Shown here one piece after another: positions 22,597 to 57,826 of a stretch of 64,000 nt of DNA. Source of the DNA: Nageia nagi (lineage: Eukaryota > Plantae > Pinophyta). Both the position numbers and the translations under genes were made by a program. The DNA lies in assembly GCA_050084985.1 (NCBI GenBank), contig JBITNC010000001.1, forward strand, positions 5,766,001 to 5,830,000. The letters run 5' to 3'. Below the pieces are notes generated by a model, which saw nothing but the letters and a program-made list of their open reading frames with translations, was not told the DNA's origin and made no database searches. Numbering within the stretch: the first letter of the stretch is position 1; every line of letters starts with the position of its first letter.

Positions 22597-23019
22597 TCAA
22601 AACTTCTCTGCCATTCTTGCACTCACTGTTCTCAGTTTTGAATAGACCTTGCCTGCAGGAGATCCTAAAATTAGACTGCACAAAGCATCTCTGGCAACTT
22701 TAATATTCAAGAAAGATCCCAATATATGAATTCTCGTATCAGCTATCACAATTCTAGTTCTTGTTGAATTCTCAATTGCAAACTTTGTCTTTCCTCCTTT
22801 CCCAGTTAACCTGCCAATTGCTCGAGAAAGATGTTCTCCACGAAGTGTTTTAACATCCTTGATCTCAAATGATTCTATGTACAGATCATCCAACCTCAGA
22901 AGTGCAATGGCATCCGGTACATCAAAGCCAAGCATAAATGCATGGACAAAATCTGCACACTTTTGGAGGTTACTAATTTCTGGGGTGTCTCGGCGTGTCT
23001 TTAATTCAACTCTGCGGGC
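22597..23019 (-). CDS. PNO1: Pre-rRNA-processing KH-domain protein PNO1/DIM2, last coding exon
   Basis: ARRVELKTR..LQKCADFV.AF.LGF..HLSRAIGRL.GKGGKTKFAIEN.TRTRIV..LILGSPAGKVYSKLR. Acceptor CATCAG ends at 23020. Confidence 0.97.
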   Translation of the reverse strand, partial: ARRVELKTRRDTPEISNLQKCADFVHAFMLGFDVPDAIALLRLDDLYIESFEIKDVKTLRGEHLSRAIGRLTGKGGKTKFAIENSTRTRIVIADTRIHILGSFLNIKVARDALCSLILGSPAGKVYSKLRTVSARMAEKF

Positions 23020-23155
23020 CTGATGTGTCACAATGAAAAAGATAATAAATGCAATGAAAGATGCTAGTCATCCATACCAGCAAATGAAAACATGGGAACT
23101 AAGTAAACTTTAAAACATGCCAAAAAGGAAGAAATAGTAATCCTGGTCAAAATAC

Positions 23156-24670: not shown

Positions 24671-26375
24671 GTATATCTCCAGACTTTATGTTTTACAAAG
24701 AATGATCAACCTTAATTATAAAAAGATGAATTTAACACCGCATATTGTTTCATTTAAATAAATATATTTTAAATTTTTAGTTAATATATTTATTAAATAT
24801 TAAAATCAAATAATCATTAAAACACTAAAACAATGATGAATTTTAGACTCAAATTTCTATTAGAAAATTACTAATTTTATCGACCTACATTCTATTGATA
24901 TATAAATCTTAATAATTAAACATAAAAAATGATTTAAATATAAATATTTTTTAAATTTTCAAAAACACATAAAAAAATACTAAAAAAAATCATAATTCGA
25001 TATAAATAGAAATGAAATTATATATGTATACTATTAAAAAGAATATGAAGATCATAAAAAGATGTATTATGATAAAAATAAATAAAATGTAATGATATCT
25101 AGGAACTTAATCCTTCTAATAATTAAATGATGAATATAAGTAATAATAAAATTATTTTATTTGAATATTATAATGAAATTCAATAATAAAATCAAGGTAA
25201 TGAATTTATGAAAAATTGTATTGAGTCACATATAGAAGAATTACGAATATTTAGAATGAAGGGGATTCATTACTCATTATAAAGTGGTAATGAATAAAGT
25301 TAATACCCTATCAACTATTTTGGTAATTAAATAGTTTTAATATCAAAAAATTTCTTTTGAAATGATATTGTATATCGTTAAACTATTTTATTTAGCGATT
25401 AAATTGTTTATGAACATGATTTACAATATTATTTTAAAAATAATAAATCAAGTATGTAGTATGTTCCTAATAGAATACAAATGAAGATATTTTAATATTA
25501 TAAGGAAAATATGAACAGCTCTTATTACAAAATTGTCATTGAGCAAAAATAATAATATGCATGATTCTTTTAATATATGTACCAACTAATAAGGTTTCAA
25601 CCTAATAACTTCATTCAACTCTCTCATTATTATTTAGTCATTCAAATTAATAGCCTTCTTAGACTATAAACATATATTTTTTATGTTTATTCTCTTGAAT
25701 AAGAATGTGCATTTGAGTTTACATTAGGGATGTTGTTGAGAAAATGGATGATAAAATATCTTAGATGTGGGAGGCTCATGTTAAAATCTCATAACACCCC
25801 AAGTGTGAAAGAATACAATAAAAATATATATCGAGTTTTTTCACAAGTGTGAAGGGATTAAGAAGTGCAAGTCATGGACGACTTTAACAAGAGAAATACC
25901 CTTTGATTGTAGCATCTTAGTTGTAAGTAGCCTACCAATAAGGTTGGTTTCTAATAAAATAAAATAAATGAGTATATTATAATATTTCTAAAGCTTTCAT
26001 ATTCTTACAACATACTAAACTTTAAACACCCACTCAAGCTCAAGGGACTGGTCTTTTACTTGAATATTGATTATTTACTTCCTTGCTTGACTTCCATGCC
26101 TATAAAGAACTTCTATTTATAAGCTTATGTTATATAGTCACTTATGCCTACATTATATAATAATTTTTGGATATATATAGTAATGTTAGGATATTATATA
26201 TTTTATGGTACTTTGAAAAATTATAAATTTCCTCCAAAGTAATATATTAAACTAAGGTTAAGGTAGATGGTATGATAGTAAATATTCATTCTATTATTAA
26301 GATCATTAGTGAAATCTAAGAGGCTTCATTATTGAGTACTATATTTTATGGTTGTAATAGTTTGTATGAAAGCTC

Positions 26376-28231
26376 TTTTTTTTTAAGGTAAATTTATATT
26401 AACAATGGTTTTTTATATAGGGCCTAAAATTCTTTCTTACAAAAATTGTTATGATATATCATTGAAAATGTTACTATCTACGTTATCCTACATTTTACTT
26501 CCATCCTTGGAAGGAGGATCCATCCATCTATGGTAACCAAACAGAGAGTATAGATCAATAACATAAGCAAAAGTATCCATTTCCATGCCCTGTATTTCTT
26601 TGGTCATAGCATTCTCCATCTTGTCCATGAAATCCCACCCAGCCTTGATGATGTTTTCTTGTTGATTAGGCATTCTATCCAATGGGATGCCCTCTGGTAG
26701 CCTCTTTATGGTTGTTCTCATTCTATGTAACTTCTGCTTTCTTTCCCTTTACTCACGATCATCATCATAAACTCGTATGATGGGCTGGTGAATTGCATAA
26801 GACTCGTAGAAGTTTGCAACAGTGAAGCCAAACTATGGGGAGAGGAGATAACTAACTTTTCTTTTTTGGTCCCCTTTCTTCATTTCTTTAGGTTAGTCTT
26901 CAACATTAGATAGAACTATATTCTTCATATGGCTCCTTCCATGGAGTTGTTCTTCACTTTTGACCTCACCCAAAGAAGTTAGAACCTCTGCAACATCTTG
27001 AATTGAGTCATCTAAATTAGAAGAGATGATAACCGTAGTGGGTGATTTAGAGGGCAATAGAGGGGTAAGGTGGTAAGGAGAAGGAGGTACTCAAGTCGGG
27101 GAAGTAGTTTTAGCTTGAGGAGGTGATGGGAGAGGAGAAGGAAGGGGTGATGGTGGTGGTAGGGGTGGTGGAGGAGGTGGTGGTGGTTGTGGAGGACATG
27201 GAGGCGGAGGCTGAAAAAGGGGTTGTGGAGGCCTTTATCGTAGTGGTACCATAATTTGAACCTTGCTATGGATAAATCCCACCAAAATCTTGATGAGACC
27301 TTGGTGGATGGGGATTTGCCCTCTGTTTCTATAGATATACGAGTCTAAATAATGATACAAGAAATAAGAGAGATTTACCCAAAGATTCCCCCTAAAATGA
27401 GCCATCAATACAAAATGATAGCCCCCTACTTTTGAGTGACATCCTTCCATAGTGAATAATTTACACAGTGCAACTACAACACTATTCCATGGATATGCCA
27501 AAGAATTCACTTGATAGCTTGATTTCTTCTTAGTAGGCATTGACTCTCCATCCTCTAGAAAATTTTTGATATCTGCTTACAAAGTTCTCACATGTTTGGA
27601 ATGTTGAATCCCTTCATTTGCCATACCCATAGAACATGCAATAATACCCAAGCTAGTTATAAAATTTAGCCTATCTATGGTGATCCTTCCTTCATCCTGG
27701 GAGTCTACAACCTATCGAGACCAATTTCTTCATGCCCTTGAAGAGAATCAATAAATCCATGAATACCCCCATTGCAAAGGGTATCCCATACTACTAGGTC
27801 TTCCTTGAACACCTCCCCATTAGTGAGTTTCAATCTTTTTTATCCTATAATTATTATTTCATAAGGTATTTTATAGGTAGGGATTGTCTAAAAGCATAAT
27901 GTTAGAATGGCCATGCAAACCACAAAATGGTTTAATTTATCCCTAAGGTGATGCCACCCTGTGAAGAACATATTGATCATCTAATCAAGAGTCCAATCAA
28001 TGACCTGCAACATCATGATCCATGCCATGGCTATAGTCCCTCCAAACAAACTCCATCTATCCCTGGTGCAGTGTGTGGGATAAATGTTCATTCTATCTAA
28101 ACATGTGTGAGTATTATTGGCATCAGCTATAGTGACTCATAGTTTAATTTCTTTCATGATTACCATAATGAGCTCATACATCGTCAGTATGAGGTTCGTG
28201 GAGTCGTCAATCTTCCCACCCATGCTGCCAA
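26376..28231 (-). mobile_element. Element A: poly(A)-tailed, TSD-flanked, RT-less retroposed element with one decayed ORF (~27850-26488)
   Basis: TSD TGTATGAAAGCTC(TTT) at 26363-26375 and 28232-28244; T9 tract at 26376-26384. ORF motifs are VWDTLCNGGIHGFIDSLQGH, YPWNSV..FTMEG..YHFVLM.HFR..VNLSYFLY and HQGLIKIL, followed by a Pro-rich tract. Confidence 0.88.
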
Positions 28232-28349
28232 TGTATGAAAGCTCTTTAAAAGCTTAATATTACTACCATTACTACTAATGGTATACCATTGAGGCAATAT
28301 GCCTTTACTTCACCATAGACTTAGGTATTATATTATTATTTTTATTTTC

Positions 28350-31300
28350 ATAAAAGTCAAGGATAAATAAATAAATCTTTTAACATCCTTTTAAACCCCT
28401 TGGTTTGTAGGATCTATCAAAGTTTATTTATAAGTAAATATATATCAATTATATATTTGAATGATTATTTCTCATATAATTAAGTTGTATAATAAAATCT
28501 CCAAGCTTCTTTTGGTTATGTTGTGTTCTCTCTTTTGTCTTAAAAGAGAGGACTTAAAAATATAGAACAATAACATATGAATATAAATTTAGATCCTTCA
28601 AATTTAATTAACAACTACAACCTTGATAAATAAATTATCTATTCTTGAGAATCAAGAGATGTTTTCCCTTGATCTCCTCAAAGTTTCAAAGCAAGCAAAT
28701 TGAAGGGTATATGAAATTATTGGTATCATATCAAGGGAGACTAAAAAGCCATTAAACATGTTTAGTCATAGATGTGGTTGTATAAATGTGAATAACATTC
28801 GTGTAAGTACTTTAAGGGATATGGTGGAAGCCAATTTTACTTATTTAGACATAGATTGTATATAAGTACCTCAACACTACCATCTTTTCCAAAGTATATG
28901 TAGTCTTTCACTCCCACACATTGTATATCTATGGAAACATTTTATTCTTTTATAATGGTATTGGGCATTTTCGTAAATTTATTCCAAAAAAAATAAAAAT
29001 ATTGTATCAAGGATTTTAAAATATTATTGGAATTCATTATTCTTAGTTGTGTATACTAGCCTATAAAATTACTTGGAAAATTGAGGTGCAAAAAATATCA
29101 TACAAATATGTGAGCCTTAAATAGAACTTGTATATAAAATTAAGCTCTTATGTATCTTTGAGTATATTGGGAGATCCTTATAAGATCTAAACCAAAACTT
29201 AACATTAAGAATATTATCGATTGTATATTAATGTAGTACATGGGGAATACTCCTTTTAGAAGATCATCCTCACATATTTGACAAAGTTGGGTAATACAAA
29301 TAAGGACATGATCAATATCCTACTTGGTTAGAGATTTGAAATATTGCACCATATGTTATTTTAAGTCTTAGTTGAATATTAGAGGGTTGCACAAGTACCT
29401 ACTTTAAAAATCTAGAGGTAACCAACGTACCTATATAGTAACAAATCTTTTATATGAATAGAAGAGTAAAGTAGTACAATTTTATTAATTACTAGATATT
29501 AAACTCTTGGTTTTAGCATGAAAAAAATTATTTGAATCTTAAAATATCACTTATTAGAAACTATAGACACCTAAATTTGATTTTTATATTTTTAAATATA
29601 TAACTTTAGGTATATAAAATTACTATAGTAAATGTTCTAAAACTAATCTCACTAGGGGTTAATTTCAAATTTCATGATTATGATTATGTTATTTTTACTA
29701 TATATATTAAAGGCCAAAAAGCAAAAGTCACAATAAATTCAAAAAGGATTTTTTTTATACAAAAAACCCAAAACATGTCATTAAAAGTTTACAACACTTT
29801 TGGAAACAACTTGCCATTATTTATTTCAATGTATAGTTACTAATTGTTACTTGCCAACTTGGTAACCCAAAAAATTGGACACCCATTTTTTATTTTATGA
29901 ATTCTTAAACATTTCATATTTTTGGAGAAGCTTTCACTCTTTAATGGAACTACTAATAAAACTGTAGCATTTAGTTCTACTATGATAATATAATAATTAT
30001 TATACTTTCTCCCTTCTAGATATAATCTTTAATTCTTACAAGAGTAAACATCAATCTTCTACGATTACATAGGAAACCCATATAGAAGCTTATGTATAGA
30101 GGAGGAATTCAAACCCTTAACATTCTATTATATTATCATCATCTTTTTCCTAGTTTAGGGAGTATTCCTCCTAAAATCATACAAAGTTTATTACCTACCA
30201 GTGGCAACTGCTTTGGTTGTTTGTCTATATCTCGTCTTTCCTTTGATAGGGTGTCTCGCTCAGATCTTATCCAATATCTTCTTTTTTATCATGCTTCGTA
30301 TTACTCAATTACAATTTTTACCTCACCTTATTACTCTCACCATCATGTATTCATTATAATATGTTTAGCTCTTTGTCTCTTGATTTTATATTTTATCTTC
30401 CACTAAAAGGTATGCATTGCACTTATTTCTTCTTTGATTCTTCTTGGAATTCACTTATTGCCATGCACCATTTATAGGTGGGATATTTTATTAGGATTAT
30501 AAAAATAAACTAAGTTTGGCTACATCCTCTTCTACATGAGTCTCATTATCTACATATACTGAATCTACTACATCCACCTCTTATTGTTTCATAGCATCAA
30601 TTCTAAATGGAGCATTATTATTTATTACATATGCATAAGGGGTAATTTCACCTTCCTTAAGATTTAATTGATTCCTAGTATTATCCAAAATGTGCTCTTC
30701 TTATCTCTATTTTAGACACCACTCAATTTTGTTTAATATGGTTGTCTTAGTTGGGCAAGATCTCCCATTATGGCCAACTTGAGCATGTGTAGAGCATAGA
30801 AAATTATTATTTTCATAACGTAATTCTTGAACCTACTTTCCCAATTTAATTAAAATATTATTATTTTAGAAAACTTAACTCCAAATTATACTAGGAAACA
30901 TAATTTGGTCACCAAGAATTGAGTTTGAGCCTTCATGACATGGTCTATAACAATTAATTTCCCAAAGGATCCTGCAATTCCTTTAAAAACTTTTTGGTGT
31001 TAGGATTCAAATAGAAGGTGTAAAAGAGTGATCCAAATTAGTGCAAATAAAATTTGGTCCTTGGCTAGATTGAATATAGATTTTAATTTCTCAAGAAATA
31101 ACTCAAACTTTCCAAAAAAAACAAGGCCCAAAACTTAGAATGAAATCTCAATATTATTCATTCTTTAAAGAAAATATGATATAGTCACTAGACACCACAA
31201 TGATACTAAGGTTAACCTTGATTATCCATTTCAATTTTTTCCCACCTTTAGAATAAATCAATATTTGGCCAAGCTTTAAGAAGTCTTCCTACAAAACTGT

Positions 31301-31455: not shown

Positions 31456-31550
31456 AACATATAATTGATAGACGGGAAGAAAAGAGCGGCAACTACGATT
31501 GGAGAAACCCTGCAACTACGGCTGGGTGCACGACGTTTGGGCCCCAATAC

Positions 31551-33005
31551 ATGGCTACGGGCTCGGGGGACCCCTCAGACCTCCCACAGAATGCTTCCTT
31601 CAGTGATGTTTTGTGATCAAGATCATCTGGAGCAGGTCGTGGAACAAACAAGCCGAGATTCCACCGTATAAACATGCCAAAGTCTGAGCCATGGAAAACT
31701 GATTCTGGTTGTCTACACGCTACATCCGAGATACCTGAAATTACTATTCATAGTGATAGCGTGCATGATGAAATCAGTCTACTGGAAACCAGAGCATTGA
31801 TTTGCAAATTTTTGGGCTCCCGCACTCCCTCAGCAGCGATCAAACTCTGGGTTGCAAATGCTTGGAAGGTTCGAGGTGAGATCTGTCTAAGCTTTTACCC
31901 GAATGGCTACTTTATTGCCTTATTTGCCACAGAAATAGATAGAGATATGGTCTTTGAAGGAGGCCCATGGTTCAACGGTAATGCAGGGCTCTTCATGAAG
32001 CCCTAGCATACAGGGTTCAAACCGGATGAAGAGTATCCCTCCTCTGCTCCTGTTTGGGTACGTCTCCCAACCCTCCCAAGGGAACTCTGGAAGGAGGATA
32101 TATTCCTAGCCATTGGTAATGCCATAGGGGCATTCATGGGGGTCTCAGAGAAGACATGGAAACTAGACTCTCTTGGTTATGCTCGGATCTGTGTCTACGT
32201 AAAAACTGATTCTCCCTTGCCAGCCCAAGTTAAGATCAATCTACCCAAGGATGGCCTAACCTACCTCCAGAATATAGACTATGAGAACCTTCCCTTCCGT
32301 TGTCGGGTATGCTCAGAATATGGGCACCTAGCCAAAGCTTGCCCCCTAGCACAAAAGGTCAGTAATAACCCAGAAACTCTCAATGAAGGCTTCCAGGAAC
32401 CCAAGCGAAAACACCAAGCACTGAAAAGATCCATCCCTGATAAGGATCCCCGATCCAGCAATCGTTTCCAAATACTGCAAAATGTAAAGGACACCCCCAA
32501 CCAAGAATCTGTACAAGCTCCAACCCCCCCAAATCTTCAACAAGATCCTCAGAACAATGAAATACAACAAGAAATAACTACAGAAACCATGAACTCCCCA
32601 CATGCTAATCCAGTGCAGAGAGTTGGTAACATACAAGAGCAAATCTTCTCTTGTTCTGATACAGATCTCTCCCCCATAGTGCAGCCAAGTCAGATAGGAA
32701 ATGTTTTACAGGAAATGGACATGAATATGGAAGACCTTTTAGGCATTGAGCAAGGTATGGAGCTAGCCAAAGAAGCCCCACCAAATGATAAACCCAAACA
32801 TATTCACAGTAGGCAACCATCCATTTCTATCATAAAGCAAACACCATCATACCTAAAAACTGCAGTAGTTGGTCAAAACAAGCTCAAAGGCAGAACATCT
32901 AACCAAACTAAGCGTTCTCAAGAAGCTATGGAAAGTATAGAAATTGGGAGTCAGACACGATTGGAGGAACTCCTTGCCTCCAAAAAACAACAGGTTTCCC
33001 AATGA
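31551..33005 (+). pseudogene. LINE ORF1 (DUF4283 plus CX2CX4HX4C knuckle) with premature stops at 31614 and 32004
   Basis: MATGSGD..SFSDVL*, ALICKFLG, GPWF, APVWVRLP, YARICV and DYENLPFRCRVCSEYGHLAKAC, all in one frame. Confidence 0.93.
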
Positions 33006-36000
33006 TTATTACATCATGGAATACTAGGGGCCTCCATGACCCCAAGAAAATTCGACATGTAAAAGCCCTAGTTAGGTCAGTCAATCCTGCAATTCTCCTG
33101 ATCCAGGAATCCAAGATGATGGCTACAGAGGTTGCAAAATATCATAAACAATTTTGGTTTAGAAGCTCTTTTCTTGCCAATGACTCAAATGGTCAATCTG
33201 GTGGAGTTATTACTTTATGGGATCCCTCTAAGGTCTCCTGCTCCTTAGACTCTATTCAGGAATCTTGGCTAGCAGTTTTGGTCAAGTGTAATGTCACAAG
33301 CTCCTCTTTTGGTCTCTTAAACTTTTATGGTCCTCAACAAATGGAGAAGAAAGTGAAGTGTTGGGAGCAAATCTCAATGTGGTTAACAGCCCACTCTACT
33401 ATACCTTGTGTAATAGGTGGGGATTTCAATGCCATCAGATCCCTAGATGAGAAAATGGGAGGCTCACGTAATATGGATAGGGGTGATGACATCTTTAACC
33501 ATTTCATTGACTCTCAACAACTGATAGAACCCTTTTGTATCCAAGGAAAATTCACTTGGTCAAATGGACAGTCAAATGAAAAGCAAATCCTCACCAAGCT
33601 GGACCGGTTCTTGCATACTGCTCATTGGATTGAACAAGGAATCATTACTCAGATGGAAGTGCTAACACATGGTGGCTCTGATCACTGGCCAATATCCTTG
33701 CATATAGAAACTCCAGCCAAACGCAAAGGTTCTCCCTTTCGTTTTGAGCGTATGTGGCTCTCCCATCCCTCTTTTGAAGAACAAGTGGAGTCTTGGTGGT
33801 CTGAGGATATATGGGTGAAAGGGTCAAAGATGTTTAGGTTTGCAGCTAAGATTAGGAAACTTAAGGATAAGATTAAAGCTTGGAACAAGGAATGCTTTGG
33901 GGTTATTTTTGACAAAAGAGCTTGTTTAGAATCAAAACTGGCTAATATTGAAGCAGCTCTCCAGATTGCACAGACTGAAGACCTCCTTAAACACGAACAA
34001 CAGACTCTCCACCAATTGGATACGGTATACCTTCAAGAGGAGATTCACTGGAAGCAAAAATCACGCCTCCGCTGGCTGAAAGAAGGAGATAAAAACACCA
34101 AATACTTTCACATGACAACTATGGCTCACCGTGCAAATAACAGGATAACAATAACACTATTACTGACCCAGAGGACTTGGATGCCCACGTTGTCTCTTTT
34201 TTTCAGTCCTTACTTAGTGAAGAAGCCATCAGTCGAGAGGAAGCCCAACAACAATGCCTGGACTTCATCCCACAGCTTATTTCTCCAGCCATGAATTTCA
34301 AGCTTATGGCACCTGTGTCAGAGGAGGAGGTTGAAGCGGCAGTTTTTCAAATGAAAAGTTGGGGAGCCCCAGGCCCTGATGGATTCCCTCCAGGGTTCTA
34401 CCAACATTTTTGGCATTTACTAAAGGCAGAAGTAGTGGAAGTTGTCAGAGAGTCCTTTACCTCAAAGCAAATTCTGAGTAGGTTCAACCATACATTCCTG
34501 ACCCTCATACCTAAGTCAGAAGATGCAAAATCTATTGATGCATTCAGACCTATCTCTTTGTGTAATTCAATATACAAAATTATTTCGAAAGTGGCTACAA
34601 ACAGGCTCAAGGTCATAGTTCCATACATCATCTCTGATGAACAAAAAGCCTTTGTACAAGGGAGACAGCTAATGGATGGTGCCATCCTAATTCATGAGCT
34701 TGTTCACTCTCTTAATACCAGGGGGGAGAAGGGATTACTTATCAAACTTGATATGAAAAAAGCATTTGATAGAATCAGCTGGTCCTTCTTGCTAAAGATT
34801 ATGGAAAAGTTTGGGTTTGACATTGGATGGATACAGTGGATATATGCTTTAATTGGCAATCCCTCATTCTCTGTGCTAATTAATGGAAGCGCTAGAGGCT
34901 TCTTCAAGAGTTCTCGTGGCCTTAGGCAAGGTGACCCACTGTCACCGTACCTCTTCATCATAGTTGCAGAAGCCCTTGGTAGGGGTCTAACCCACTTGCG
35001 ATCCTCTGGTCACCTAAAAGGCTTGCACGTCAACCACCTTTGCCCAGCTGTCTCACACTCCCAATTTGCTGATGACACGCTACTAGCTGCCTATCCATCC
35101 ATTCAGGAGATAAATACTATCAAGAGTCTTCTCAGTACTTATGAAATTGCCTCTGGTCAAGCAGTAAACTATACAAAGTCAAAGTGGTACAGCATCAACC
35201 TGGACCCTGTCCTCCTTCAGGTAATGGATAGATCCACAGGTATGACCCTAGACACACTTCCAAGCATTTACCTAGGTCTTCCCCTTGCTCAAGGTGGAAA
35301 TGTAGGAGGATTCTGGGACTCCATAGTTGGCAAGTTAAAGTCAAAACTGGAGGTATGGAAAGGCAAATGGCTCTCTTCCACTGGTAGACTGGTAAAAATT
35401 AAGGCTATCCTGAGTGCTTTGCCCAATTTTTGGTTGAGTGTTTTTTGGCTGCCAAATAAAACTCTTGATCAAATGGAACAAATCATGCAGAACTTCCTAT
35501 GGAATGGTATGTCAGAAGCCAAAAAAATCCACCTAGTAGCTTGGCAAACTATTTGCACTAGTACTAAGTCTGGGGGGTTGGGAGTCAAACGCTTAAGACT
35601 AATGAACCTTGCTCTATTGGGCAAAGTTGTGTGGAGATGTTATTGCAATCCTTCATCACCATGGAGCCAAGCTCTTAGATCGAAATACTTAGACAACCAG
35701 GACCCCACACGAATCTTCACAGCTGAAAACTTGCCTATTGGTTCATTAGTTTGGAATGGTCTTAAGAAAGCCAGGAATCATGTTTTACAATTCATAAAGT
35801 GGGATGTGGGGTCAGGGAAAAAAGCAAAATTCTGGGATGACATCTGGTTACTCCCTGAATCACTCTCCAAAAAACCTGAGTTCGATGCACTTAAGCCCAT
35901 CTTGTGCAATCTTTGGGGGATAGTATTGTGGATTATTATGAGTGGGTGGATGACAATTTAGTAAGACAGCCAAGATGGAAGAAAATAACAGGGATCCTCC

Positions 36001-36785
36001 CTGGACAGGAGGCAGTCTCAACTCAGCTTGAATCCATGCTACGCAGCCACAAGCTCAATCCAAAAGAGGAGGATAAGCTCATCTGGCCACTTACCCCCTC
36101 CAGGTCATACACGGTTAAATCAGCCTATAAAGCTCCTCATACTGCTGCACGCTCCCCTTGGCCTCCAACAGTTTGGTCCAAAGTGTGGAGAAACAGAGCA
36201 TGGCCTAAGGCCCAGTTTTTTCTATGGACAGCCACTCACGATAAACACCTTGTGGGGGTCCAGTTGCTCAAACGTGGCTTCTTAGGCACATACAATTGTG
36301 TCTTTTGTGGTGAAGCAGAGGAGTCAGGGCCTCACATCCTATTGCATTGTACCTTCACCATGGAAATCTGGTTCAAATTCCTCTACATCTTTGGCTTACA
36401 GTGGACTATGCCAAGCAATATAGGGAACCTGCTATCCTCATGGGAATACCCCAAATAGAGACAAGTGCCAATGGTAATCTGGAATGCAGCTCCGGCAATG
36501 ATCTGCTGGAATCTATGGATAGAACGAAATAACCGCATTTTCAGAGGCCAACCAAAATTAGTAGACCAGGTTTGGCATATTACAGGCAAAAATTTAGCAA
36601 TGATATGGGCAGCCCACACAGTTGTTGATAATGAAACAAGGCAAGAACTTTCAAACCTTCACCCCTGGGACCACATCCTCTTTGCCTAGCATCTCAAAGT
36701 ATCAAACACTATCGATGAAGCTACACCAGCTGGATCAGATGTAGTAGCTGAAACAAACTTCAGACGAGCTCCAGAAAGCGTCTAG
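33002..36785 (+). pseudogene. LINE ORF2 (APE endonuclease, RT, zf-RVT) with frameshifts at ~34150 and ~35915 and stops at 36456 and 36687
   Basis: SWNTRGL, LIQE, GGDFN, KLDRF, SDHWPI, PGPDG, RPISLCN, KLDMKKAFD, GLRQGDPLSPYLF, FADD, YLGLPL and CVFC..EE..HILLHC. Confidence 0.96.
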
Positions 36786-37118
36786 CACCAGAAAGCGTCT
36801 AGCTCCAGAAAGCGTCTAGCACCAGAAAGCGTCTAGCTCCAGAAAGCGTCTAGCACCAGAAAGCGTCTAGCACCAGAAAGCGTCTAGCTCCAGAAAGCGT
36901 CTAGCACCAGAAAGCATCTAGCTCCAGAAAGCGCCTAGCACCAGAAATCATCTAGCTCCAGAAAGCGTCTAGCACCAGAAAGCGTCTAACTCCAGAAAGC
37001 GTCTAGCACCAGAAAGTCTAGTACCTAGAAGTCTAGCACCAGAAAGTTGAGCTCCACAGACGAGCCCCAAAAATGAGCTCCAGAGGTGAGCTCCAGAGAC
37101 GAGCTCCAGAGACGAGCT
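36765..37118 (+). repeat. 17-bp minisatellite (CCAGAAAGCGTCTAGC[A/T], ~14 copies) followed by 13-bp GAGCTCCAGAGAC units in the LINE 3' UTR
   Basis: Seen directly in the sequence. Confidence 0.95.
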
Positions 37119-37367
37119 TACTGCATATGCTCCAGGGGGGCCCCATCAGCGACCTTAGTATTCATACTAGTAGTCCTAGTAATCTTAGCGGTTTGATTTA
37201 GTATCTTGTACAGCATGTCTAACTGTGCTCACTGTAGCTTCCATAAGCTTGACATGTCTTTCAGCCTCCTTTGCTGGATTGGCAGTAATGACCATTATGT
37301 AATTTTGTTGACTGGTTAATCAATAGAATTTATTTACTTACCAAAAAAAAACATATAATTGATAGAC

Positions 37368-54900: not shown

Positions 54901-57826
54901 TTGGATGAACACATAATTGAAGCATTGTCAAATATCAAAATTCTTTAGCAAAAAAGGAAACTATGCCATGATAAGCAAATGAAACATGTAAAATTCACTC
55001 CAATAAAGTGGGTCTTATTATTTGATTCCAAGTATTAAACCTTCTTAAAAAATTACAAACTAGATGGTTGGGGCCATATCAAAATTTGCAAGTCTTTGAT
55101 AATGGAACAATTAAACTTTAATTAATTGTGACTCTAGTAGAATCATGTTGGTAAATGGGCATCGAATACAACCTTACACTCTACGCATGAATAAGGAGGA
55201 GTTTACAGAATAAATAAAGAAATAAGAGTTATGTTTGATTGAGGAAGATTTATCTTCCTCATCCAAACAACCTTGATCCATGATAGTTTAGAAGAATAAG
55301 ATTGAGCTTAGAAATAGAATCAATATGGATTTTGAATGGATAATCATAAAGGCAGTCAGATAGATGAAAACTAGAAAATTATCTAGGTGAAAACCTCTAT
55401 GTCTTATATTCATTATCTATTTCTAAAAAAAAGAGAAAAAGAACAAAAAAGAAAAAGAAAAAGATTCATATTCTAAAGATTAGTTGAATATTATAAAGAA
55501 TTTCAATATATATTTATGGTTTTAATGTTTTACCATTACTTTAGAATAAATGTGATCTTTTTGGAATGATTATTCTATAGACAAATGGCCTATAGTTACA
55601 ACTTTAGAATTGTAACTATAGAATCCTTAAAAGCTTAAACTAGCTTCATAATACTTAAAGGCTTGAGAATACTTGAGCACTTCAAGGAAACCTATCAAGA
55701 ATGCCAAAACAAGGACACATCATCTATCTTGGATGAAGAAGTGGGCATCTTGGCAATGATCACTAACCATGTGTCATATCAGTAGCAAATTGTGTCAAAT
55801 CCAACTAACAACACTTGTAAGATACATATTTAATGGTGGAGGTATGTATTTATTTTTAAATTACTAGTTGATTTAAGCCTAAATCAGATCTTAGTAATCT
55901 CACACATGTTTCAAGTCAAAATCATTTAATTATGAGTTAGGATGATCACATGAAAGAGATAAGTGTCCAAATCTAAATGGGAAATAAACATGTTATATGT
56001 TAGCCCCAATTTGACATGAAATCATGCAAGTTGGTGAAAATATGGTGATAGTATGTAATCAATGAACATAGTAGTTTATATCAGCTGAAAAAATTTATCA
56101 ACCTTCATTTGAAAATCACTTTAAAAGAATTGAGAAGGGATAAAAGGGTAGTGAGATTTTTCCAAAAATTCCATATTTTAGAATTCTTTGAAAAGTTTCA
56201 AGGTTCTAATGAGTAGCTGGTTCTATAGTTTGTGGAAAAATTTGAAGAAAATTCTATACAGTTGAGGGATCATACAATACCCATTATTATTGAGATTATT
56301 GCTATAATATTTAGACTCCCTATAATAGGTGATGATTTGATTATGAAATAGCAATATGATGCTTTGCTTGATAGGTTCCATTGGAGAGGAGAACAAAGGG
56401 CCAAGAAATACATCACTACCATTTATGTATAAGGAATTAAGAGGAAAACTCTTCCAAACTAGTGGACAGAGGTGGAATTATGGATTATCAAATTCTTAAC
56501 CTATGAGGGACAACATGGAACAATCATGGGCCATCACTTGAAATTGCTCATTAATTTAAGGTATGGGTCAGAACTCAACTATAACATTTCAAAGTTTCTA
56601 TATCAAAGTTTGCAAAATATGTCTAGATGGGTTAGGGAAATGCAAGGAATAATCTTATGAACTTGAAGCACCATGGTTTAATTACAATGCTCTATAGAGA
56701 ATATTTCTTAGCTCAAGATAATGGAAAAGAATTATGGGTAGGTTTCTTAGGGTATGATCCATATTCTATACCTGAAACCTCAACCATGTAGGAGGAAACT
56801 TTAGGCAGCCCTAGTGAAACCATATTTAGACCAAAAATAAAGGTTTGTCCCACATACACATAAATACCTAAATTTGTAGTGGGATCCATTAGTACTACCT
56901 AGGATGAATTGCCTAAGGACCATTCCAATTCCTTAGAAATTGATGATACTAAGGAGGAAAACACATAATTACCTAAGTCTTCAAACCAACCATACCATAA
57001 GGAGGTTATTTTTAAATACCCTTCAATATCCCACTCAACCCCTATTTACAATGGTGAAAAGAGAAAATTTGAAAGAGGTAAGGAGATAGAGATTAAAAAG
57101 GTATGAATATAAGTCATAGTTTTTCATGAAATTTAAGAGGATATCTACACAGTTAAGGAAGAAGGAAGTGGCTCAAACATCAACACCTCTAATTAAGAGA
57201 CACTGTAGAAAAGAAACTTAAGAAGAGAAGGAATTTGGCTATTTCACAACCTTTGAAACCCCTAAAAAAATGATAAACCTAGATGAAGAGGATAATGAAA
57301 CCAATAATTAGAATGTATAAATGGGATAATTTCCTATACAAGAAGAAGGAAATGATATTCAACAACCTCAAACTAAGGAAGAACCAAACTCTATCCAATT
57401 GACCATATATGTAACTGGGCAATTGCTAAAAGAACTTGAGATACAAGTTCATGAACTCATGCCTAGATTTCATCTTTTGGAAAAGGAAAATGCCAAAATA
57501 AATGCTAAGAAAAATAAATTGGAGATTGAGAATGATAAATTAGTCAAATAATGCATAGAGCTCACCTTAAGCAACTTAGAACTTGAGGAAAAATACAAGG
57601 CAATTGAGGAATTAATAGTTCAAATTCAAAATGTGAAATTGCCTCATCCAGTTGTAGGTGAGGGTGATGCTGTTATTATACAAGTATCAAAGGCACTTAC
57701 AAGAAAATAAAGGGAAGTTAAAAACTTAAAACTTCAAAATACAAAGCTAATAATACAATTGGTCAACATACATGAAAAGCATTCTAAAGAACTCAACATA
57801 CTTAAGAAAGAAGTCAAGGACATGCA

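Follow-up and report, generated by a model that had tools for sequence, protein, structure and literature searches.

What kind of sequence, in the conifer Nageia nagi, lies on the minus strand between two short direct repeats, ends in a run of adenines, and preserves the wreck of a single protein-coding gene? The unit in question, here called copy A, occupies positions 26363-28247 of a 64,000-nt stretch of contig JBITNC010000001.1 (the window, by which we mean that whole stretch), and could have arisen as a stray retrocopy, as the tail end of a larger element, or as a member of a mobile family in its own right. The evidence set out below leads us to regard copy A, with good though not complete confidence, as a dead copy, probably close to full length, of a protein-coding but non-autonomous retroposon, mobilized in trans by a long interspersed nuclear element (LINE) of the L1 type and carrying a gene for a protein of VANC21-like predicted fold. 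Copy A itself is non-functional, an ordinary dead copy; the interest lies in its family.

Insertion Hallmarks of Copy A

The insert measures 1,853 nt and is enclosed by two exact copies of a 16-nt repeat, its parts being arranged as follows.

26363-26378, no strand: left target-site duplication TGTATGAAAGCTCTTT, an exact 16/16 match to 28232-28247, its last three T overlapping the tail
26376-26384, minus strand: A9 tail (T9 on the plus strand), read from the sequence, with six A outside the duplication
26385-26487, minus strand: 3' untranslated region (UTR) of ~100 nt, ending ...TTAATATAAATTTACCTT, flanked by the terminal stop codon (26488-26490) and the tail
26491-27237, minus strand: C-terminal half of the broken open reading frame (ORF), from the translation, with five in-frame stops
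27238-27860, minus strand: N-terminal conserved domain of ~205 aa, from tblastn of 136 family proteins, a hidden Markov model (HMM) built without window sequences (2.4e-40 and 6e-4), and an exhaustive search (best E 3e-22)
27861-28231, minus strand: 5' UTR of ~370-380 nt, without coding similarity and with no family or Pfam match
28232-28247, no strand: right target-site duplication, followed by AAAAGC (nick site TCTTT|AAAA)

The first-pass annotation of this DNA had described a minus-strand insert with a flanking repeat and an A9 tail at a target reading GCTCTTT|AAAA, and our reconstruction agrees on every point, the restored plus-strand target being GCTCTTT|AAAAGC and the insert-free site one that would read ...TAATAGTTTGTATGAAAGCTCTTTAAAAGC.... 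Because three of the nine tail adenines are held in common with the repeat, the target duplication amounts to 13-16 nt. At such a T-rich/A nick, the T's at the 3' end would pair with a poly(A) tail and serve as primer. The consensus of the L1 endonuclease (EN) is TTTT/AA, a preference that this target matches. When the pieces of the broken ORF were searched separately, neither joined nor read through, no reverse transcriptase (RT), EN, or other Pfam match appeared in any piece of copy A on either strand; nothing in Rfam was matched either, and motif arrays and palindromes were absent from copy A save for the (GGT)n that encodes a poly-Pro tract. From the A-run, the duplication, the nick site, and the lack of enzymes, we infer insertion by target-primed reverse transcription.

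Might the flanking repeat instead be a coincidence, and the region a fragment of a long terminal repeat (LTR) retrotransposon, or of some other repeat, that happens to hold an accessory ORF? By calculation, an AT-rich window of 64 kb should contain ~0.4 isolated 16-mer repeats spaced within 6 kb, and a comparison of language-model features places the family protein near ATHILA ORF-1 (PF03078, 0.87) as well as Transposase_32 (PF20167, 0.90), scores that shuffled proteins sometimes reach and that we treat as leads only; none of the 61 family members scanned matches either HMM. This repeat, however, borders the A-run at one end of the insert and a T-rich/A nick site at the opposite end, and encloses exactly one gene unit. 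For a given tail, the probability that the 16 nt following it would recur within 6 kb is ~7e-6. The repeat is also isolated, with no longer duplication around it; among the 80 of 389 pairs listed, the other 16-mer direct repeats, the 18-nt duplication of a nearby LINE excepted, belong to runs of overlapping matches within longer duplications. Neither LTRs, gag/pol sequences, nor inverted termini were found near copy A, and we consider a chance repeat very improbable indeed.

A Reading Frame Broken Beyond Use

The frame of copy A is dead: it has lost its start codon, suffered one frameshift, and accumulated 7-8 in-frame stops. Alignment with the family proteins follows one frame over 27860-27726 and a different one over 27723-27238, which places the frameshift near 27725. 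The triplet ATA at 27848-46 aligns with the family start codon and is probably the former start codon of copy A. A set of codons reading 'MGGK' at the extreme 5' end of the unit mimics the MGG start of the family, and is taken as chance because it lies ~380 nt upstream of the aligned start. The in-frame stops stand at 27842-40, 27579-77, 27237-35, 27093-91, 26895-93, 26835-33, and 26751-49. Beyond the conserved domain one encounters, in order, a poly-Pro tract (27094-27234), a linker rich in Ser, Asp, and Glu, and a conserved terminal block (26491-26748) that shares 75% identity over 68 aa with P0180, a protein from another contig.

Was this damage suffered after insertion, or did the template RNA already carry it? 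Seven to eight stops in 444 codons correspond to ~0.12-0.14 substitutions per site, and at that rate the probability that all 32 bases of the duplication would remain unchanged is 1-2%. So many stops beside an untouched duplication point to a template that was likely damaged already before insertion, as would fit mobilization in trans; the argument is suggestive only.

Two further observations concern pieces of this frame. The protein P0015 joins the sense end of an A-like domain to the antisense of A's C-terminal region (window 27378-27241 and 26573-26734), a make-up that suggests a rearranged A-like copy, deleted and inverted, elsewhere. Separately, the N-terminal motif 'VVWDTLCNGG' of copy A (27839-27708) weakly resembles the 'hVxWxxxC' segment that follows the RT in ORF2 of the LINE in the window (35497-35649; E 0.18-0.45), a likeness that is probably due to chance.

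An Old Family with Three Subfamilies in the Window

To what does this broken gene belong? Searched exhaustively with HMMER, its 113-aa piece matches the representatives of 82 clusters formed at 50% identity (E<=1e-3, the best at 3e-22). A profile search adds dozens of proteins named Gb_*, which are gene models of Ginkgo biloba (EukProt EP01018); P0024 is a hypothetical protein of Taxus chinensis, and most other members come from assemblies of public runs. Another profile search, aimed at named angiosperm relatives, yielded unnamed fragments only. Among 61 family members, no Pfam family is recurrently matched, even at E<=10, and the family profile finds no chain among the PDB sequences at E<=10, VANC21 included. 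The conserved motifs are an N-terminal MGG....EP, GLP.EG, PW..V....(K/R)Y.TLEG(R/K), YHF.LLNHFR, and, as the last of them, PLHQGL(I/L)K. An N-terminus of the form MGG(D/E/P/K/Q)x3-4(E/K)P is conserved in many subfamilies (alignments A1, A3, and A7).

The window holds two further copies. Direct tblastn aligns copy A with copy B in two places, 27839-27708 with 61736-61656 (44% over 27 aa, E 2e-4) and 27576-27238 with 61466-61194 (25% over 91 aa, E 9e-5), the two matches being colinear and on the same strand. A family HMM made from alignment A7, which contains database proteins only, scores the 113-aa and 44-aa pieces of A at 2.4e-40 and 6e-4, and the pieces of B at 2.4e-19 and 1.1e-9; with the tblastn matches, these scores make the A/B homology secure. 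The same HMM reveals copy C on the plus strand (1.3e-13 at 56463-56657). At the DNA level, a blastn comparison of A with everything else in the window, B, C, and the LINE included, finds no identity. The nearest relatives of A are P0001-P0008 (up to 74%), those of B are P0073 and P0012, and those of C are P0021 and P0062, so that by sequence affinity the three copies represent three different subfamilies within 64 kb.

The first-pass annotation had claimed colinear protein similarity between A and B without obvious DNA identity, had quoted peptides from both, all of which are present in the translations, and had described a C-terminus in A that differs from that of B. The comparison upholds these statements, the poly-Pro tract and the charged C-terminus of A having no counterpart in B. 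Its broader proposal, that two such divergent copies speak for an old, abundant, and diversified family and against a one-off retrocopy, is borne out by the 82 clusters, the three subfamilies in the window, and, as described below, relatives that are retroposons and a gene under purifying selection. The family is thus supported as large, old, and diversified; it has no name and is undescribed. Dead copies account for a third of the family diversity visible in this 64-kb window, and they probably moved in trans.

Copy C extends over 56229-57800 (+), is decayed, and has a coiled-coil-like C-terminal region at 57399-57700. The 3' end of copy B (57827) lies just beyond it, and B may therefore have inserted into or beside C.

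Complete Relatives Define a Retroposon

The strongest indication of what copy A once was comes from better-preserved relatives. Nine metagenome loci (L001-L009), fetched with a close alignment of what we call the Ginkgo-type subfamily, come from five or six independent insertions. Except in L009, in which the motif is truncated and the end was not read, the ORF is followed after ~215 nt by a common terminus, ...GGACCTTT(C/T)AACACCCCTTCTACCTTAAT, and an A-run of 11-17 residues (A7 in L005), past which the sequence differs between insertions. Target duplications measure 14 nt in L004 and 13 nt in L007/L008, and these same loci are units of 1.72 kb with homologous 5' ends ~300 nt upstream of the start codon. 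The layout is thus a 5' UTR of ~300 nt, an ORF of 394 aa, a 3' UTR of ~215 nt, and an A-tail. Terminal inverted repeats are absent from A and from L001-L008, the intact relatives match no Pfam family, and every relative examined with its context proves to be an A-tailed unit.

In two insertions the 394-codon ORF is intact. The two proteins are 67% identical, and identity at codon positions 1/2/3 is 78/83/45%, giving a ratio of nonsynonymous to synonymous change (dN/dS) of ~0.06, synonymous change being almost saturated. Over the final 44 nt of the 3' UTR, the same two copies nevertheless differ at one base. Shared termini, tails, duplications, the low dN/dS, and the kept 3' end establish the Ginkgo-type subfamily as a genuine and old lineage of retroposons in which both the gene and the 3' end are under selection. 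Its ~44-nt terminus is a candidate recognition site for the reverse transcriptase of a partner.

That near-invariant stretch before the A-tail is seen at L002:4650-4696, L004:2695-2740, L007:2152-2197, and L005:2975-3017, and it holds a possible 6-bp hairpin (AAAGGT-TTGGGG-ACCTTT). By eye, a 3' signal seemed to be shared more widely, reading TTTACCTT-A9 in A, TTTACCCATTAAT-A8 in B, CTACCTTAAT-An in the Ginkgo-type units, and TTTACTTACC-A9 in the LINE. A profile of the 62-nt conserved Ginkgo-type 3' end finds nothing significant in the window, the 3' UTR of copy A included, and we claim no common recognition sequence.

How does copy A compare? Its layout is a 5' UTR of ~370 nt, an ORF of ~450 codons, a 3' UTR of ~100 nt, and an A-tail, which is the same plan at nearly the same size; the agreement suggests that A belongs, almost complete, to a sister lineage. 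A 5' UTR of ~370-380 nt, as against ~300 nt in the intact relatives L004 and L007, likewise indicates that A is probably near full length.

Sequencing reads bear on the subfamily of A itself. Run X1, of low coverage, is the sole public run with part of the stretch, and its contigs were considered at a likeness of at least 85%. Many diverged contigs (85-95%) fall on copy A, with a summed depth, not to be equated with copy number, of 0.2-7.5 in the interior, 40-45 over the last ~250 nt (26416-26669), and 0-0.8 in the unique left flank. This pattern fits a multi-copy A-like family with 5'-truncated members. The contigs are short, and none bridges either junction of copy A.

These data allow one to ask whether copy A is merely an ordinary processed pseudogene, that is, a one-off LINE-mediated retrocopy of an mRNA from a host or transposon gene elsewhere. 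An A-tail, a duplication, and the absence of introns are exactly the traits of a processed pseudogene, and the shared element termini are known for the Ginkgo-type subfamily rather than for that of A. Each gene copy in the Ginkgo-type subfamily, however, is a unit at a locus of its own, with the termini common to the subfamily and with its own tail and duplication; copy A has the size and layout of those units, and A-like DNA is multi-copy in run X1, with a 3' excess. We therefore judge a one-off retrocopy improbable and prefer to see in A a member of a retroposon family.

The Nearby LINE and the Surroundings of Copy A

If copy A is a passenger, what might have carried it? A LINE of the L1 type lies ~3 kb away, at 31474-37349 on the plus strand (listed also as 31456-37367), with ORF1, EN, RT, zf-RVT, an A9 tail, and an 18-nt duplication, AACATATAATTGATAGAC. 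Its ORF1 has no Pfam match, and the element is apparently autonomous. Within its 3' UTR, at ~36770-37030, is a tandem array of ~22-nt units (CCAGAAAGCGTCTAGC...). The family HMMs find no match on this LINE, ORF1 (32136-33005) included, one LINE having been compared.

The relationship between gene and LINE might be closer than that of passenger and carrier: copy A could be the 3' remnant of a 5'-truncated LINE in which the gene followed ORF2 as a third ORF. LINE insertions are as a rule truncated at the 5' end, and run X1 shows an excess of sequence from the 3' end of A. Against this, no similarity to ORF2 or zf-RVT is seen in the 370 nt that precede A's gene, and their length is that of the 5' UTR in the stand-alone relatives, whose 5' ends coincide across independent insertions; the absence of a family match on the window LINE also speaks against such an origin. 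To us, the truncated LINE appears about as improbable as the processed pseudogene, and a stand-alone retroposon that borrows the LINE machinery remains the better account.

As for the surroundings, a single ORF of 144 codons that encodes the KH domain of PNO1 (E 2e-43) stands on the same strand at 22597-23031 (-), which puts copy A upstream of PNO1, as had been noted on first reading. On the other side, the right flank at 28321-28955 is a very high-copy repeat in run X1, with a summed contig depth of ~1,660 as against <1 in the left flank.

Predicted Fold of the N-Terminal Domain

AlphaFold models were obtained for members of two different subfamilies, P0016 with a predicted local distance difference test score (pLDDT) of 85.5 and P0012 with 78.8. 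Both are predicted to form a compact alpha/beta domain of ~200 residues, followed in P0016 by a long helical hairpin. For both models, the top Foldseek match is DNA-bound VANC21 (9lnj_A), with E 0.07, probability 0.95, and a template-modeling (TM) score of 0.39 for P0016, and E 0.39 and TM 0.34 for P0012; the next matches fall to E >=1 and TM ~0.1. VIA-align, which works independently of Foldseek, superposes 9lnk_A on P0016 with Z 7.5 over 210 residues (root-mean-square deviation (rmsd) 5.1 A) and on P0012 with Z 7.8 over 206 residues (rmsd 5.6 A), and for P0012 it is the sole chain above Z 5, the next reaching 3.7. VANC21 is thus the only whole-domain structural neighbor of both models. Judged from these models, the likeness is a real but distant relationship of fold, and not membership in the same family.

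VANC proteins are structurally homologous to the PMD protein MAIN, and VANC21 dimerizes via a coiled-coil helix (PMC13547354). Both features parallel the layout of the family protein.

A Proposed Mechanism

Taken together, these observations suggest the following scheme. An L1-type LINE would supply endonuclease and reverse transcriptase in trans, and target-primed reverse transcription would insert the copy. The cargo in intact relatives is one gene of ~390-450 codons, whose product comprises an N-terminal globular domain of ~205 aa, in predicted fold nearest to the part of VANC21 that is bound to DNA, then a low-complexity linker and a C-terminal helical hairpin. Purifying selection on the gene while the elements spread implies that the protein serves the element. 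By analogy with VANC21, the protein would most likely be a dimeric nucleic-acid-binding accessory factor that recognizes copies of its own family and helps them to be expressed or to evade silencing. By analogy with ORF1p, it might instead form an RNA-protein particle that captures the LINE ORF2 protein, a role about as plausible as one in anti-silencing.

Several observations weigh against this account of copy A and its cargo. A partner LINE whose 3' end would match did not come to light, the profile of the Ginkgo-type 3' end being empty in the window. For A's own subfamily, run X1 gave short diverged contigs with a 3' excess, the shared termini being seen in the Ginkgo-type subfamily. As to a template defective before insertion, the lower bound of 0.04 substitutions per site gives P ~0.3 for an unchanged duplication, and would allow all the damage to be post-insertional. 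The fold match is modest, with rmsd values of 5-7.7 A, 8% identity, Foldseek E >0.01, and TM 0.34-0.39, and the 61 family members examined show no sequence link to DUF1985 or PMD (PF10536) at E<=10.

A more ambitious version of the proposal is speculative, and we would sooner bet against it than for it: that an RT-less retroposon lineage older than the split of Ginkgo and conifers lives as a parasite of L1-type LINEs with its own dimeric DNA-binding anti-silencing factor of VANC21/PMD fold, its subfamilies A, B, and C having diversified along with their targets, as a retroposon counterpart of the VANDAL/VANC system. Were the protein indeed to act on the DNA or RNA of its own element, one would have a testable model of how repeats are tolerated and propagated in giant gymnosperm genomes, and the anti-silencing strategy of one dicot DNA transposon would extend to retroposons.

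Some consequences are more immediate. Although gymnosperm gene sets are full of its members, dozens of Ginkgo 'genes' among them, the family has no Pfam entry, and the annotation of gymnosperm genomes should mask its units as transposons.

Comparison with Known Systems

Passengers of LINEs that lack autonomy are usually non-coding, like short interspersed elements (SINEs) and SVA, or accidental, like processed pseudogenes. HAL1 (half-L1) is, to our knowledge, the one well-known coding passenger. What sets the present family apart is a passenger that keeps a non-LINE gene under strong selection, with a predicted fold pointing to the VANC/PMD class of transposon chromatin factors. Our search of the literature found no paper on a gymnosperm retroposon family with a VANC/PMD-type gene.

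Processed pseudogenes, SVA, and other L1-mobilized RNAs bear the same signature as copy A, namely an A-tail, a duplication of ~7-20 nt, and a T-rich/A nick. Unlike this family, these RNAs have neither a selected coding cargo of their own nor element termini conserved across old lineages. HAL1, which occurs in mammals and encodes ORF1p only, is likewise an RT-less, protein-coding, L1-dependent non-autonomous retroposon that arose and has persisted as a family (PMC5753468). The cargo of HAL1, however, is L1's own ORF1 protein, whereas the family gene is unrelated to ORF1 of the window LINE, the only LINE compared.

On the side of the protein, PMD is found in both genes and transposons (PMC7156037), and PMD proteins (PF10536; MAIN/MAIL1) are structurally homologous to VANC (PMC13547354), with no PF10536 match in the members searched here. 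VANC21, the anti-silencing factor of VANDAL21 (PDB 9lnj/9lnk), is the sole solved structure that matches the whole N-terminal domain in the predicted models of both subfamilies. Like the family protein as modeled, it is a transposon-borne accessory protein that combines a globular domain with a helical or coiled-coil part (PMC13547354). It differs in that the family shows no sequence or DUF1985 match to it and a fold likeness that is modest. Copy A holds no arrays of the VANC21-type target motif, and DNA binding and anti-silencing by the family protein are suggested by analogy only. The two also differ in the element that carries them, in that VANC sits on a Mutator-like DNA transposon of dicots and the family gene on an RT-less retroposon of gymnosperms.

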